A stretch of DNA of 64,000 nucleotides, from the sequence record PQ657772.1; one strand, 5' to 3'. This document shows positions 7,002 to 12,893 of the stretch, one piece after another (the stretch's first letter is position 1; the number at the start of each line of letters is the position of its first letter). Below the pieces are notes generated by a model. That model had not been told where the DNA came from. It saw only the letters and a list, made by a program, of their open reading frames with translations, and searched no databases. Position numbers and translations under genes: made by a program.

Positions 7002-7400
7002 TTACATGTATACCTTTTTCAAATCCTTGGAACAACGGTCAAAAATTGTGTTGATGAATTCGACATCCTCTTTGATATTGGAGTCTATAGCATCATTCTC
7101 GTTTCTTGTTGTGTTCCTGTATTTGTGTTCAGGGTGATTGTATACCACCTTGACTACATTATTTAGGTCTACAAAAAATGACGATTTTTGCGTATAGGAA
7201 GCCTGAAGCTTGATGAGTTTACCATCGTTTTGTAGATTAGTCTTGTGAATTAGTTCTTCAATACCATCTAAATGGCTATAGCTATCCTGTTCTTTGACGA
7301 ATGTAACAGTTACCAGTACTGACTTCTCATCTCCAAAGTCAGAGATATTTTTAACAGCACTGATGATTTCTAAGTTTGAAAAATCTAATTCTTTTAGCAT
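7002..7400 (-). CDS. hypothetical protein
   Basis: Likely start MLKEL at 7400 (TAATG overlap). Confidence 0.65.
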   Translation of the reverse strand: MLKELDFSNLEIISAVKNISDFGDEKSVLVTVTFVKEQDSYSHLDGIEELIHKTNLQNDGKLIKLQASYTQKSSFFVDLNNVVKVVYNHPEHKYRNTTRNENDAIDSNIKEDVEFINTIFDRCSKDLKKVYM

Positions 7401-7767: not shown

Positions 7768-7800
7768 AAAAAAATAGGGACTCGATTTCTCAAGTCCCTA
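7768..7800 (-). terminator. intrinsic terminator
   Basis: TAGGGACT...AGTCCCTA stem plus T run. Confidence 0.8.
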
Positions 7801-7810
7801 TCATAACATA

Positions 7811-8422
7811 TTAATTGTGATTATTCAATTTCTTTTGTTCTTTTTTTAGAGCTTTCATATGTCGTCCAAAATCACGAACATGCCATATATGGTCGGTTTC
7901 CCATAGTTCTGTACGTAAACGGCGTTCTTCCAATTCTTCTGGCGTAGGAATTTTAGATTTCTTCTTATCTTTATTGAAAAAATCATTCATATGTTCTTCC
8001 AGTAGATTTCTACCCTTAACTTTTTCCAGGAATTCATCTACTGATTCAGTTTTATTAGAACGAAGACTGTTACAACGTGAACACATGGTGTTGTAATTTG
8101 ACTCTAAATCAGGTCCACCCTTAGATGCTAGTTGGTTATGATCTACTGTCATCAGTACTTCATATAGACCACAAACTGCATAGACATTTAAGTGAGGTTT
8201 ACCATATACCGGATCAGTGCTATGTGAACGCTCAATGCGAACTTCAGTGGCTTCAATACCACACGCAACGCATTTACGATTCTTAACGAATGTAAGTACT
8301 TTTTGTGGGAAGTATCGGAAAGTAACACCGTTATATGTATAGCGTTTCATCTGCGTACTTCTTTGATTTAACTCATCAAGAAGTGATAGTTTGGCAACAT
8401 AGTAGACCTGATATTTTGACAT
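7811..8422 (-). CDS. HNH endonuclease-domain protein
   Basis: CVACG...TVDHNQLASKGG...N...MCSRCNSLRSN. Confidence 0.85.
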   Translation of the reverse strand: MSKYQVYYVAKLSLLDELNQRSTQMKRYTYNGVTFRYFPQKVLTFVKNRKCVACGIEATEVRIERSHSTDPVYGKPHLNVYAVCGLYEVLMTVDHNQLASKGGPDLESNYNTMCSRCNSLRSNKTESVDEFLEKVKGRNLLEEHMNDFFNKDKKKSKIPTPEELEERRLRTELWETDHIWHVRDFGRHMKALKKEQKKLNNHN

Positions 8423-8424
8423 TT

Positions 8425-8739
8425 TTAATCCTCGGATTTAATTTTAACCTTAACATCTTGATTTTGTAAATCACGAATAGTTTTAATTAATGCATCATGT
8501 TTTAGTGCACAGTCATTGTACATTGCATCCCATTTTGCAAGTACTGCGAGAATTTCAGCACCATCATATCCTCTGAACCCATTTTTATCGACCATGATCT
8601 TACTTGGTAGTGGTGTGTTTTCATCACAACGTTCAAGTAAGATTTCTTGTTCTACAATTGGCTTAGGTTGATACTTAATTTCTTCAGCACAACCACTAAT
8701 TAATAGAAAAGAAATTGCAAATACTAAAGCGTATTTCAT
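8425..8739 (-). CDS. Rz1: o-spanin (Rz1-like lipoprotein)
   Basis: Lipobox LISGC, Pro-rich linker, Y.DCALKHDAL; 4-nt overlap with the i-spanin. Confidence 0.8.
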   Translation of the reverse strand: MKYALVFAISFLLISGCAEEIKYQPKPIVEQEILLERCDENTPLPSKIMVDKNGFRGYDGAEILAVLAKWDAMYNDCALKHDALIKTIRDLQNQDVKVKIKSED

Positions 8740-9110
8740 TTGAATTTATTCCTCGCTGCAAGGGAATTCTGTTTAAGTTCATTCAGAAGTTTAACGCCAT
8801 CTTCATCTAGACATACGTTTTTGTAAACTTCTCTTTCTACTATAATAGGCACTTGTGTCTCGATAACTTTAGCATTATCTTGCATTATCTTTTTGGTTTC
8901 TATATAGTTTTTTGCATTTTCTTGCTGCATCTTAGCGAGTGCAGAATCAACTTTCTTTTCTATTTTTTGGTCAATACTTTCTTTATAACCAGTATAATAA
9001 GTATTTGCTGACCATCCACCGTAAACACAACCTGCCATTACTCCTACTACCAAAATTGGTTTCCAATATGGTATTAAAACTTTTGAAACAATAATTTCTA
9101 GTACACTCAT
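8736..9110 (-). CDS. Rz: i-spanin (Rz-like)
   Basis: N-terminal TM, coiled coil, VPIIVEREVYKNVCLDEDG. Confidence 0.8.
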   Translation of the reverse strand: MSVLEIIVSKVLIPYWKPILVVGVMAGCVYGGWSANTYYTGYKESIDQKIEKKVDSALAKMQQENAKNYIETKKIMQDNAKVIETQVPIIVEREVYKNVCLDEDGVKLLNELKQNSLAARNKFK

Positions 9111-9163
9111 AATAACATCTCCTATAGTTGGTAATATTATTTAGAGTGTACTATATTATATGT

Positions 9164-9580
9164 TTACAACATTTTTTGAATATGATCTACGAGTTTATAC
9201 AGTTTAGTGTTTTCATTCTCGTATTCCAAATCAACTTCAACTTTGAATTCTTCTTCAAGTTCCATGATCATTTCAATCCAGTCAAGCCAATCGAATTTAA
9301 ATTTTTCCACGACTTCACATTTAGTAAGATGGAAGTTCATTGATACATCTTTTTCGGATGCATTTTTGTCGCGACTTGTAATGAATTTGACAATTGCTTT
9401 TTCAACGTCAGTTAATTCACGAGTGCGATATTCTGGTTCAAGATACCATTCGCCATTATTGATAGCTTCCAACGAAAGTCTAAGTTCATGCATTAGTTTA
9501 TAACGATCAGTACTTTTATGGATGCGGTTAACTTCGCGATTCAGTACACGTAGTGCGTCTTTGATTTGTTCGTTTAGCAT
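9164..9580 (-). CDS. acyl carrier protein-like fusion lacking the phosphopantetheine Ser
   Basis: C-terminal ~80 aa aligns to ACP: FDWLDWIEMIMELEEEFKVEV vs [21 protein letters not shown]; likely start MLNEQ. Confidence 0.75.
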   Translation of the reverse strand: MLNEQIKDALRVLNREVNRIHKSTDRYKLMHELRLSLEAINNGEWYLEPEYRTRELTDVEKAIVKFITSRDKNASEKDVSMNFHLTKCEVVEKFKFDWLDWIEMIMELEEEFKVEVDLEYENENTKLYKLVDHIQKML

Positions 9581-9590
9581 AACAATCCTC

Positions 9591-10829
9591 TTATTTTTTA
9601 CTGTACCATTGCATTTCACGGATATCTAATAGTACCTTCGTAGCCAACTTTATGTTTGGTCGCTTCGGTAGATGGGTCTTATGATACGCCACATTTCGGA
9701 TGTAGTCAACCTTTTCGTTGAAATAATCCATAACTTCTTGATACAACCACTTCCCGTTACGAATGTCCATCAACATAGCAGCATCCGGTCGGTGAACTTG
9801 GATGATACCAGTTTCAAGTGCTTCCTGTGCTGTATTCAGCAGCCTGACTGTATGCATTGCGTGTTTACAATCATAACCGTGGTGTGATTCAAGAATAGCA
9901 CGTTTGGCATTACGATTCTGCTTCCATTTGTGATAACTCTTACGGTTCTCACTATTTTCTTTGTATTCTTTTTCATTGAATTTTACAATGAGTTCAGGAC
10001 GAACTTTCAATTCTTCTGTAGTACGTTCTTTGTTGAAGTAACGTAGTGAACCATCAGCATTCACTGTACTTTCATTCGGGTTGATAATTACCCCAAAGAT
10101 GTTTTCACCGTAATGGATTAGTTCATATCCAGAATTGTAATTCAATAAATTGAAATCACGATCTAATACTTTATCAGTACTATAATTATGTACTAAACGT
10201 ACAAAATGATATTGTTTCAATGCTTGTGTTGAAACTAATTGTAATGAAGTATCACGCATGTATTTTTCAAAATCAATTTTTGTAGCATTGAATGGGTGAA
10301 GATTGGATTTATTCAAACGGTCAACCAAATACTGCGGGAATGTATCATACATCCATGAAAGTACTTCGTCAACTGGATGTTCTTCTAAAATTTCATTTAG
10401 TTTACGTTCAGCAATTCGTTCCTTATCGAGCCAGCCGTGGTGATTAGACATACGCTTAACCTGATTGTATGCATATCCACTGTATGAGTGTGCAATCTTT
10501 GAACTCAATAATTGCTGATTGAATGAGCGTAGATAGTCATAGATTTCAGTACTTTCTACGATGTGTTCCGGTTTAACCCATAGTGATTCAAGAATGTTTG
10601 GGTTAGCTTCAGTATACAGACTTAAGTACTGATTGATTTCATAAAATTTAGTATCTTCTTCAGAAGTATCTGAAACTTCCTTAACATTAAAAAAAGGAGT
10701 TAGGATATATTCTTTGTTTGCAAGGAAGATACCACGATAATCTGTATCACTTTCTGGTGTGCTTGTGCCATACGCCTGTGAACCTGCTAAGTGTTTCACA
10801 ATAGTTTGTTCTAGAAAATTGTTTTTCAT
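9591..10829 (-). CDS. DNA pol beta-fold nucleotidyltransferase (RlaP/YcgL-like)
   Basis: GSQAYGTSTPESDTDYRGIF, ANPNILESLW, YDCKHAMHTVRLL. Confidence 0.9.
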   Translation of the reverse strand: MKNNFLEQTIVKHLAGSQAYGTSTPESDTDYRGIFLANKEYILTPFFNVKEVSDTSEEDTKFYEINQYLSLYTEANPNILESLWVKPEHIVESTEIYDYLRSFNQQLLSSKIAHSYSGYAYNQVKRMSNHHGWLDKERIAERKLNEILEEHPVDEVLSWMYDTFPQYLVDRLNKSNLHPFNATKIDFEKYMRDTSLQLVSTQALKQYHFVRLVHNYSTDKVLDRDFNLLNYNSGYELIHYGENIFGVIINPNESTVNADGSLRYFNKERTTEELKVRPELIVKFNEKEYKENSENRKSYHKWKQNRNAKRAILESHHGYDCKHAMHTVRLLNTAQEALETGIIQVHRPDAAMLMDIRNGKWLYQEVMDYFNEKVDYIRNVAYHKTHLPKRPNIKLATKVLLDIREMQWYSKK

Positions 10830-11229: not shown

Positions 11230-11739
11230 TTAACCACCGTACTTTGACTTATATGTTTCTAAAGATAAAGAAATGCGATTTTGCTTTTTAATTCTTTCAT
11301 CAATATCCTTTGAATTCTTAACACTTCTGTATACATCAGCTAATAAATTATAATCTTCTTTATTTGAGCTATGTAATGCCCAACCTATATCTGTTTTGAT
11401 TCGAACATATGCTTTATTTGATGTGAAATAAAAATTGAATCCGTTAGACCCATCAAAAATATCATAAGTATTTACCCAATCTCCATAAGGAAAACTCATT
11501 GGTACTGACTCATAATCAATGGTGATATCCGATAAATTTTTAGAACAGTACTTTACAAAGTGGTAAACAATCGGATCACATTTTGATAATTCGTATTTGT
11601 ATTCAATGATAGTTTTTCTATTAGTATCATTGATGGCATATTCTTTTATCAATGGACTTTTTTTGATGATAAGAGTCCATAGAAACGATTCTAATCCAGT
11701 TTCATCAACTTTTTCTTTCTTTTTGAAAAATGAAATCAT
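11230..11739 (-). CDS. hypothetical protein, tandem paralogue 1 of 3
   Basis: KKSP.IK....D..R..IIE.KY.LSK. Confidence 0.75.
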   Translation of the reverse strand: MISFFKKKEKVDETGLESFLWTLIIKKSPLIKEYAINDTNRKTIIEYKYELSKCDPIVYHFVKYCSKNLSDITIDYESVPMSFPYGDWVNTYDIFDGSNGFNFYFTSNKAYVRIKTDIGWALHSSNKEDYNLLADVYRSVKNSKDIDERIKKQNRISLSLETYKSKYGG

Positions 11740-12257
11740 TTATATAAACCCTTAATTTTCTGTCTATTATGTATATCATTTTGCTGAATTTTCAAATTAG
11801 TAAGATTGTGTCTTACACCTTCAACGCCACGCATTATTTGTAACATAATTAGTGATTCGTCATATGTTAGAACATTGCTATTATTATCGATATATACTTT
11901 CACTCCACTTTCAAGATAATCATTTTCTTTGGAGTTAAAGTTTCTAATAGCAAACTTAACGCCATTTGTTGCATCACTGAATACATATCGTTCCGCACCG
12001 TAGAATGTTTTTCCACGAAATAAACCGCCTTCTTCAAACTTCCAACGACTGGATTCATAATCATTAACGTAATCAATGATTAATGGTAGCAAAGGGTGTT
12101 TGCTCAATTTATATTTTGCTTCTAACAGAACACGACGATCTTGATCTGTATTGATGATATCTTTAAGTGTGAAACTTTTTGATATAATTTTAAAGATAAT
12201 TTCATGCCAAATTAAAGTACTGTTTTGTTTTCCAACTGGGCCAAAAAACATATTCAT
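11736..12257 (-). CDS. hypothetical protein, tandem paralogue 2 of 3
   Basis: SKSFTLK...TDQDRRVLLEAKYKLSK. Confidence 0.75.
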   Translation of the reverse strand: MNMFFGPVGKQNSTLIWHEIIFKIISKSFTLKDIINTDQDRRVLLEAKYKLSKHPLLPLIIDYVNDYESSRWKFEEGGLFRGKTFYGAERYVFSDATNGVKFAIRNFNSKENDYLESGVKVYIDNNSNVLTYDESLIMLQIMRGVEGVRHNLTNLKIQQNDIHNRQKIKGLYK

Positions 12258-12263
12258 TCCTCA

Positions 12264-12830
12264 TTAGTATAAATCAGTAATGTCTTTGTATGCATTAATC
12301 TGTTTTTGTTGTAATGAAAGTTCATTGAGTTTAGTTACCATTTTATCTACGCCAACACGTATATAGAAAATAATAAATGAATCTAACTTGCCTAGAGTAA
12401 TTCTTGAACTGAAAGTTGAAAGTTTTCTTGCATAAACATAAATTTCTTCTTCACTTGGTAAACGTTTCTCAATCAGCAAGTTTTCCACACCATTCGGCTC
12501 ATAATCAATCTCGAACTCTACGCCTATCACAGTATCTTGAATGATATCAGTATATGAACCACCGAAAAAAAACTCTCTTGGTTTGGTTCTCCAACGAGGA
12601 CTAAATGGGTCAGATGCGTATTCTTTTACAAATTTGTAAAAGGACATTTTACTGAGCATATACTTCATCTCAATTAGTGCTTTGCGGTCATCATCAGTTT
12701 TAAACTCTGCTTTGAGCGATGGACTTTTACACAGTAACTTAACTAAATTGTTGTACATCTTTAATGTACGTTGGTCTTTCATTTCTTGGATTTTGTGACG
12801 CTTTGGTGGTGGTAGTAAAGATTTGACCAT
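12264..12830 (-). CDS. hypothetical protein, tandem paralogue 3 of 3
   Basis: CKSPSLK...TDDDRKALIEMKYMLSK. Confidence 0.75.
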   Translation of the reverse strand: MVKSLLPPPKRHKIQEMKDQRTLKMYNNLVKLLCKSPSLKAEFKTDDDRKALIEMKYMLSKMSFYKFVKEYASDPFSPRWRTKPREFFFGGSYTDIIQDTVIGVEFEIDYEPNGVENLLIEKRLPSEEEIYVYARKLSTFSSRITLGKLDSFIIFYIRVGVDKMVTKLNELSLQQKQINAYKDITDLY

Positions 12831-12853: not shown

Positions 12854-12893
12854 ATTATACACATAAAAGAAAAGCCCGTCAATAGACGAGCTT
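12854..12893 (-). promoter_or_regulatory. sigma70-type promoter TTGACG-N17-TATAAT overlapping a terminator hairpin
   Basis: -35 at 12877-12882 lies in the 3' arm of AAGCTCGTC-TATT-GACGGGCTT; -10 at 12854-12859. Confidence 0.8.

Follow-up and report, generated by a model that had tools for sequence, protein, structure and literature searches.

The window analysed here, a stretch of 64,000 nucleotides from sequence record PQ657772.1, carries on its minus strand a gene for a small two-domain protein, P0001, that resembles acyl carrier proteins (ACPs) and lies between a nucleotidyltransferase gene and a pair of spanin genes (Table 1). The ORF begins with an ATG at 9580, has a GAGGA 5′ of it at 9590-9586 and ends with a stop codon at 9166-9164. 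In this region the window matches Escherichia phage EC.P1 at 100% identity and eight further jumbo coliphages (350-386 kb; relatives of 121Q and PBECO4, genus Asteriusvirus) at 97-99.9%. Upstream of the nucleotidyltransferase gene we also observed three tandem paralogues of unknown function (window 11230-12830, minus strand; 169, 173 and 188 aa) with 30-38% mutual identity and homologues in the metagenomic contigs L022 and L023; they had no Pfam match, and PADLOC gave a weak row for the 188-aa protein (DUF2290, E = 0.0046). On the other side, an HNH endonuclease gene (7811-8422, minus strand) lies directly 3′ of the o-spanin gene, as it does in Asteriusvirus, Alcyoneusvirus and Munch, and is missing at that place in Eneladusvirus and Mimasvirus.

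Table 1. Features of the ACP-like locus, in window positions.
Feature	Position	Strand	Basis or remark
ACP-like gene P0001, 138 aa, two-domain	9164..9580	-	ORF; phrog_18343; dN/dS 0.20 vs 121Q
N-terminal helical hairpin, residues 1-55	9416..9580	-	Helices 4-19 and 23-41 (AlphaFold2 model)
ACP-fold domain, residues 56-138	9167..9415	-	Helix I 58-70, II 98-112, III 118-121, IV 127-137
Trp98 codon TGG	9287..9289	-	Position of phosphopantetheine-bearing Ser36 of AcpP
Trp101 codon TGG	9278..9280	-	AcpP Thr39 position; invariant in subfamily, variable in Ser-bearing outgroup
RlaP-type (PF10127) pol-beta nucleotidyltransferase	9591..10829	-	Upstream gene, 10-nt gap to ACP-like gene
53-nt spacer, ACP-like gene to i-spanin	9111..9163	-	CTAAATA at 9144-9138
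i-spanin (8736-9110) and o-spanin (8425-8739)	8425..9110	-	Always immediately downstream of ACP-like gene
Terminator-like hairpin (12893-12872) overlapping sigma-70-type promoter	12854..12893	-	Cluster head; consensus scan only
Terminator-like hairpin after HNH endonuclease gene	7773..7802	-	Likely end of transcription unit

The initial annotation saw in this protein an ACP homologue with a helical domain fused at its N terminus and Trp (TGG) at the position of the phosphopantetheine-bearing serine, and profile matches, BLASTP, an AlphaFold2 model, Foldseek and VIA-align all bear this description out. The PHROG ACP family phrog_5934 matched P0001 with E = 3.8e-8, and phrog_18343, a phage family of unknown function, matched it over its full length (E = 1.8e-43, residues 2-138 on profile positions 1-138). 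When a five-sequence family profile was compared with PDB sequences, the top matches were all ACPs of type II fatty acid synthesis (FAS), the best reaching E = 9e-7 over residues 58-135. BLASTP aligned 44 residues, helix II through helix IV, with E. coli AcpP at 39% identity, and the alignment pairs Trp98 with Ser36 and Trp101 with Thr39. The AlphaFold2 model (mean pLDDT 86.4, pTM 0.66; the fold alignment was made without Turkey5, RaK2 and ph0011) consists of two N-terminal helices, a lower-confidence linker and a four-helix domain in which helix II begins at residue 98. For this model, the top Foldseek rows held only solved ACPs (probability 1.00, target-normalised TM 0.65-0.78, rmsd 2.5-4 Å), and all 50 rows listed by VIA-align, which covered 48,161 representative chains, were carrier proteins with Z up to 9.0; the superposition extends over model residues 55-138. 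The predicted fold is therefore ACP-like.

Scores against the curated family models fell below their cut-offs, at 13.4 bits for PF00550 (PP-binding; cut-off 20.8) and 25.5 bits for TIGR00517 (NCBIfam AcpP; cut-off 70.45). The four-helix carrier-protein fold and the ACP homology of residues 56-138 are established, while functional membership of the ACP family is not, because the defining serine is absent. For the N-terminal hairpin, a profile search of PDB sequences found no relative (best E = 0.18) and Pfam gave no significant match (best E = 0.0025, for single members only). PADLOC returned nothing for P0001, the leads in the ESM Atlas were all sub-threshold (score at most 0.88), and an Aeromonas ‘lysis inhibitor’ appeared as a weak structural row for the model (E = 1.1). 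The BFVD entry A0A2Z5HFQ2 (432 aa) is 100% identical to P0001 over the aligned part and is probably a nucleotidyltransferase/ACP-like ‘fusion’; a true fusion of P0001 with the nucleotidyltransferase was considered and rejected.

Since TCG and TGG differ by a single substitution, the initial annotation had allowed that Trp98 might be a sequencing error or a private mutation. This worry can be set aside. The codon is unchanged in at least eight phage isolates whose proteins are identical or nearly so, the 121Q clade (73% identity to P0001) also has TGG at position 98, and nucleotides 9287-9289 were unchanged in the contigs of three independent public runs. RNA libraries contain the locus only as contigs, which show the TGG and carry no information on transcription or its timing. 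When we compared the window with 121Q, that is, two genes that both bear the Trp, we obtained a dN/dS of 0.20 at a dS of 0.82, with 0.12 for the hairpin and 0.28 for the ACP domain. A dN/dS of about 0.2 places the Ser-less protein under purifying selection, and together with the independent isolates and the two clades it rules out an error or a private mutation.

By sequence searches, the ACP-like family is rare and phage-specific. By tblastn we found a homologue in 45 phage records, all of them from jumbo phages of Escherichia, Klebsiella or Salmonella. Among 1.84 billion representative proteins, a profile search yielded only 21 matches at E ≤ 1e-3, and scans of IMG/VR, JGI metagenomes and GTDB genomes added almost no further members. 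More distant orthologues were located by using the conserved i-spanin as an anchor and taking the gene 5′ of it, which led to Salmonella phage Munch, Erwinia phage pEa_SNUABM_12 (Eneladusvirus), Cronobacter phage GAP32 and Xanthomonas phage XbC2 (Mimasvirus). These orthologues combine an ACP domain with a hairpin carrying the motif S/T-x-x-R-Y (S23 and Y27 in P0001), which is kept in all lineages, and D-S-L-D is present in 4/4 of them; with P0033, the outgroup has Ser in 5/5 lineages. Because the distant relatives all carry Ser, we take Ser to be the ancestral state.

A 29-member tree and a per-column analysis, the latter with 15 subfamily lineages for column 98, revealed a reciprocal switch in conservation between positions 98 and 101, which in P0001 both lie in the motif F-D-W-L-D-W-I-E-M (residues 96-104). 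In the outgroup, position 98 is invariably Ser and position 101 is V, E, L, M or T. In the Asteriusvirus/Alcyoneusvirus subfamily, position 101 is invariably Trp, while column 98 holds eight residue types (W, S, T, N, R, E, D and K) in the 15 lineages, with an entropy of 2.73 bits that ranks it fifth most variable of the 138 columns, and is flanked by the invariant D97, D100 and W101. The deep branches of this D-x-x-D-W clade have S, T, D, D, K, E, R and N at position 98. Core Asteriusvirus is basally Ser (P0013/14, ph0011, P0010, P0009 and also A4), and 121Q and the window group form one derived Trp98 clade (support 91/90) with P0008 (Thr) nested inside. Ser in every distant orthologue tells in part against the initial proposal of a Ser-to-Trp mimic, which was to fall if all relatives carried Ser. 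As judged from these alignments, the changes that define the lineage are the release of Ser and the fixation of Trp101, and Trp98 itself is incidental, because only four columns of the subfamily vary more than its own and Trp101 is invariant. Trp98 as a designed mimic residue was rejected for this reason; the fixed novelty is Trp101.

The initial annotation also suggested that the protein may be non-modifiable, and P0001 is indeed predicted to escape phosphopantetheinylation at the canonical site, since Trp occupies the Ser36 position and even S36T AcpP is unmodifiable and non-functional (PMC3340395). The Thr alleles of the family would therefore also be non-carriers. Some close relatives retain Ser and could be modified (ph0011, A4, P0009, P0010 and P0013). 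In the complete phage records searched we found no second PP-binding domain (fEgEco12, 121Q and RaK2) and no 4′-phosphopantetheinyl transferase (PPTase; the same three and ph0011); these searches were positive in most control genomes, and fEgEco12 is 99.9% identical to the window over a 2.5-kb query. That the protein still works as a carrier, through modification at a different residue or of the Ser alleles alone, and serves phage-directed acyl or aminoacyl transfer is hardly credible. The strict conservation of Ser in the distant orthologues and the D-S-L-D-W kept by some Asteriusvirus alleles would fit such a role, but sister lineages under the same constraints have W, T, N, R, E, D or K at the site, the S36T precedent applies, and the phage genomes searched yielded no PPTase, no ligase and no second carrier protein.

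The docking surface, in contrast to the cofactor site, has been retained, as the initial annotation supposed. In the per-column analysis, helix II is the best-conserved stretch of the entire protein: D97 and D100 never vary, the positions of E103, E109 and E110 hold an acidic residue in almost every member, and F112 is invariant or nearly so. Residues D97, E103, E109 and E110 of P0001 are equivalent to D35, E41, E47 and E48 of AcpP and so match its acidic residues for AcpS and Fab recognition; AcpS cannot recognise AcpP without D35, E41 and E47/E48 (bioRxiv 10.1101/2025.01.28.635281). Thr39 of AcpP, which corresponds to Trp101, is situated at the FabF interface (PMC7966745). We hypothesize that P0001 most likely acts by binding other proteins and not by carrying, because the acidic helix II is conserved, a putative interface Trp has been newly fixed and the former cofactor site has been set free.

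Downstream of P0001, the order ACP-like gene, i-spanin gene, o-spanin gene (then usually HNH and DUF7325) is constant in every lineage examined, including three metagenomic contigs, and the upstream gene is variable. The location beside spanin genes has already been remarked for the Eneladusvirus orthologue, for which acyl supply or control of spanin maturation was suggested (PMC7760394), and such an accessory role in lysis, exerted with the adjacent i- and o-spanin, might be extended to P0001. We consider it very unlikely. The spacer 5′ of the spanin gene measures 45-75 nt across lineages and harbors a G+C-rich hairpin with a T-run, i.e. an intrinsic terminator, in five of them (Munch, pEa_SNUABM_12, GAP32, XbC2 and the P0020 contig) and a CTAAATA motif in 8 of 12, the 3′ end of which is 28 nt before the i-spanin ATG in the window. 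CTAAATA may help to drive the spanin genes as part of a promoter, and we read the spacer as a probable boundary between the transcription units of the ACP-like gene and of the spanin genes, which weakens a functional link to lysis. As a separate observation, the motif is rarer than expected in the rest of the window, where both strands together have 6 copies and about 27 would be expected. Furthermore, a Ser-less protein would be unable to carry acyl groups, and from its sequence P0001 has neither a signal peptide nor a transmembrane segment. Lipoprotein acylation through the Lgt/LspA/Lnt pathway draws on phospholipid donors and not on acyl-ACP.

Upstream, the initial annotation had placed the gene directly downstream of the nucleotidyltransferase gene. 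This is correct for the window and also for ph0011, UE-S1 and the P0017 and P0022 contigs, but adjacency is not constant, since three to five small genes lie between the two in RaK2, Munch, Eneladusvirus, Mimasvirus and the P0020 contig, and two tail-fibre genes are inserted there in 121Q/A4-type phages. The two genes are nonetheless usually found in one gene cluster. A partner encoded by the phage in this cluster, notably the nucleotidyltransferase, is a serious rival to a host partner: P0001 could be a subunit or adaptor of a phage-encoded complex that docks on the nucleotidyltransferase or on a small cluster protein, and we give this a real, if minor, chance of being right. Cellular ACP is a structural subunit of MukBEF and of mitochondrial complexes. 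The nucleotidyltransferase and ACP-like genes share a cluster in nearly every lineage, with direct adjacency in EJP2 as well as in the window, ph0011, UE-S1 and the P0017 and P0022 contigs, and the terminator right after the ACP-like gene in five lineages would make it the last gene of the unit. On the other hand, gene neighbourhood alone is weak evidence, and in the 121Q/A4-type phages, where the tail-fibre genes intervene, the ACP-like gene has its own predicted promoter. The rates of evolution given below also argue against a tightly co-evolving pair.

A consensus promoter, TTGACA-17-TATAAT, was found directly upstream of the ACP-like gene in 121Q, Turkey5, ph0011 and UE-S1. In the window, the corresponding candidate stands at the head of the cluster (12882-12854; TTGACG, 17 nt, TATAAT) with 11 of 12 consensus matches. 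All of these promoters are consensus matches only, and the count of such matches in the window is not above that in shuffled sequence. If they are real, the ACP-like gene would be among the early transcripts made by the host polymerase. We also observed in 121Q (L001:2925-3000) that only a few bases separate TTGACA-17-TATAAT from a hairpin with a T-run, after which comes the ribosome binding site of the ACP-like gene, and the same layout recurs in L002, L004 and L005. A transcript started at the L001 promoter would miss most of the 5′ arm of this hairpin. Because of this, the hairpin may block read-through from the tail-fibre gene and spare the promoter's own transcripts.

Within its block the ACP-like gene is the fastest-evolving. 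When we compared the encoded proteins with those of RaK2, the nucleotidyltransferase showed 71% identity, the i-spanin 60%, the DUF7325 protein 53%, HNH 52% and the o-spanin 47%, against 30% for the ACP-like protein. Across lineages the nucleotidyltransferase is 68-75% identical where the ACP-like protein is only about 30% identical. The Turkey5 ACP-like protein (L002:3001-3396) is 36% identical to that of the window, whereas the flanking genes are 55-80% identical, as if a divergent allele had replaced the resident one in a genome that is otherwise close. The DUF7325 protein is 100% identical between the window (7002-7400, minus strand) and 121Q (L001:5175-5573) while the neighbouring genes are 71-84% identical, which suggests recent recombination and mosaicism within the block.

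In Escherichia phage EJP2 (OQ411014; L030:2266-2418), the 50-aa ORF between the nucleotidyltransferase and i-spanin genes aligns to the hairpin alone (E = 2e-10 against residues 1-46 of the Munch protein, 46% identity). It is followed by no remnant of the ACP domain. The allele is known from a single isolate. Since EJP2 lacks the whole ACP domain, the domain must be dispensable in at least one isolate. It could thus be that the essential function resides in the hairpin, whose S/T-x-x-R-Y motif is conserved in all lineages, and that the ACP domain is a relic deprived of its chemistry and on its way out. The graded series from Ser-bearing through Ser-less to hairpin-only versions, and the rapid evolution of the gene, are what one would expect of such decay. 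We nevertheless find it distinctly unlikely, because helix II is constrained: the ACP domain taken alone has a dN/dS of 0.22-0.32, helix II is the best-conserved stretch, the new invariant Trp101 represents a constraint gained, and EJP2 is one isolate.

Published virion data bear on where the protein may act. LC-MS/MS of virions prepared from three Erwinia phages revealed the 15.6-kDa Eneladusvirus orthologue (PMC7760394), which points away from a purely cytoplasmic role in takeover. For phAPEC6, the published set of 62 virion proteins does not include its orthologue gp313c, which is a 121Q-type Trp allele (PMC7247149).

Overall, we lean, though without great confidence, towards P0001 being a phage-specific, cofactor-independent acidic docking module with a host ACP client as its most likely partner, and a decoy for host ACP clients is plausible. 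The initial annotation had listed SpoT among the proposed targets of such a decoy. SpoT is reported not to bind apo-ACP (review PMC3896788) and is for this reason an unlikely target, which we rejected. A host ACP client is favoured because the residues that clients read are kept, expression is probably early, the gene evolves fast, and there is a precedent in apo-ACP, which inhibits glycerol-3-phosphate acyltransferase and arrests growth (review PMC3896788).

The data show the fold, the homology, the loss of Ser, the purifying selection, the reciprocal switch and the gene context; the timing of expression, the binding of a partner and the identity of that partner are inferred. The ancestor had an ACP domain with a canonical D-S-L-D site, as Munch-like phages, Eneladusvirus and Mimasvirus still do. 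In the Asteriusvirus/Alcyoneusvirus subfamily, dependence on the cofactor would then have been lost. The Ser column drifts freely there and reads Trp in the window, Trp was fixed at the AcpP Thr39 position, and the acidic face of helix II was retained. The protein would be produced from host-type (sigma-70) promoters, and helix II together with Trp101 would fill the ACP-binding site of a partner, most likely a host enzyme that reads helix II of AcpP, such as PlsB, a known target of inhibition by apo-ACP, or AcpS. The N-terminal hairpin may add a second, independent contact or self-association.

A bolder version of the docking-module reading, which we think unlikely, is that Trp101, one helical turn from the lost Ser, takes the place of the phosphopantetheine arm itself. 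P0001 would then be a constitutive, AcpS-independent mimic of holo-ACP, made early and blocking a host client at its cofactor tunnel or where it receives ACP (PlsB, AcpS or the AcpP site of MukB, for example). If so, an arms race at this interface would account for the rapid evolution of the gene.

We found in the literature neither a functional study of this protein nor a discussion of its missing Ser. The ancestral Ser in sister genera and the reciprocal 98/101 switch are new here, as are the promoter and terminator context, the comparison of evolutionary rates and the hairpin-only EJP2 allele. ACP is among the most connected of bacterial proteins: it serves the synthesis of fatty acids, lipid A, phospholipids, biotin and lipoate, and it contacts MukBEF, SpoT and IscS. 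A phage protein that has the docking helix of ACP without its chemistry would lend itself to probing or inhibiting this interaction network and, should it act on a host enzyme, would represent a new way of taking over the host. The family is also a natural experiment: coliphages that are closely related and easy to grow carry versions with Ser, without Ser or with the hairpin alone, which allows one to ask what a carrier fold does after carrying ends.

The four-helix fold of P0001 is similar to that of E. coli AcpP and other type II FAS ACPs (PF00550, TIGR00517). Like AcpP, P0001 retains acidic recognition residues, equivalent to D35, D38, E41 and E47-E49, plus F50. Unlike AcpP, it lacks Ser36, which is replaced by Trp and hypervariable in the subfamily, and has an invariant Trp for Thr39; its loop I is about 5 residues longer and includes an extra short helix, and a 55-residue N-terminal hairpin has been added. 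In being apparently an unmodifiable ACP with an intact helix II, it resembles over-produced E. coli apo-ACP, but inhibition by apo-ACP is an experimental effect of over-producing the host's own protein. Phage proteins already annotated as ‘acyl carrier proteins’, among them pEa_SNUABM_12 gp158, GAP32_159 and XbC2_157, are orthologues of P0001. The Eneladusvirus, Mimasvirus and Munch-like orthologues share its two-domain architecture, its hairpin motif and its position just upstream of the spanin genes. In contrast to P0001, they have the canonical D-S-L-D and no Trp101, and they score closer to a true ACP, that of XbC2 reaching 56.8 bits in the TIGR00517 search.
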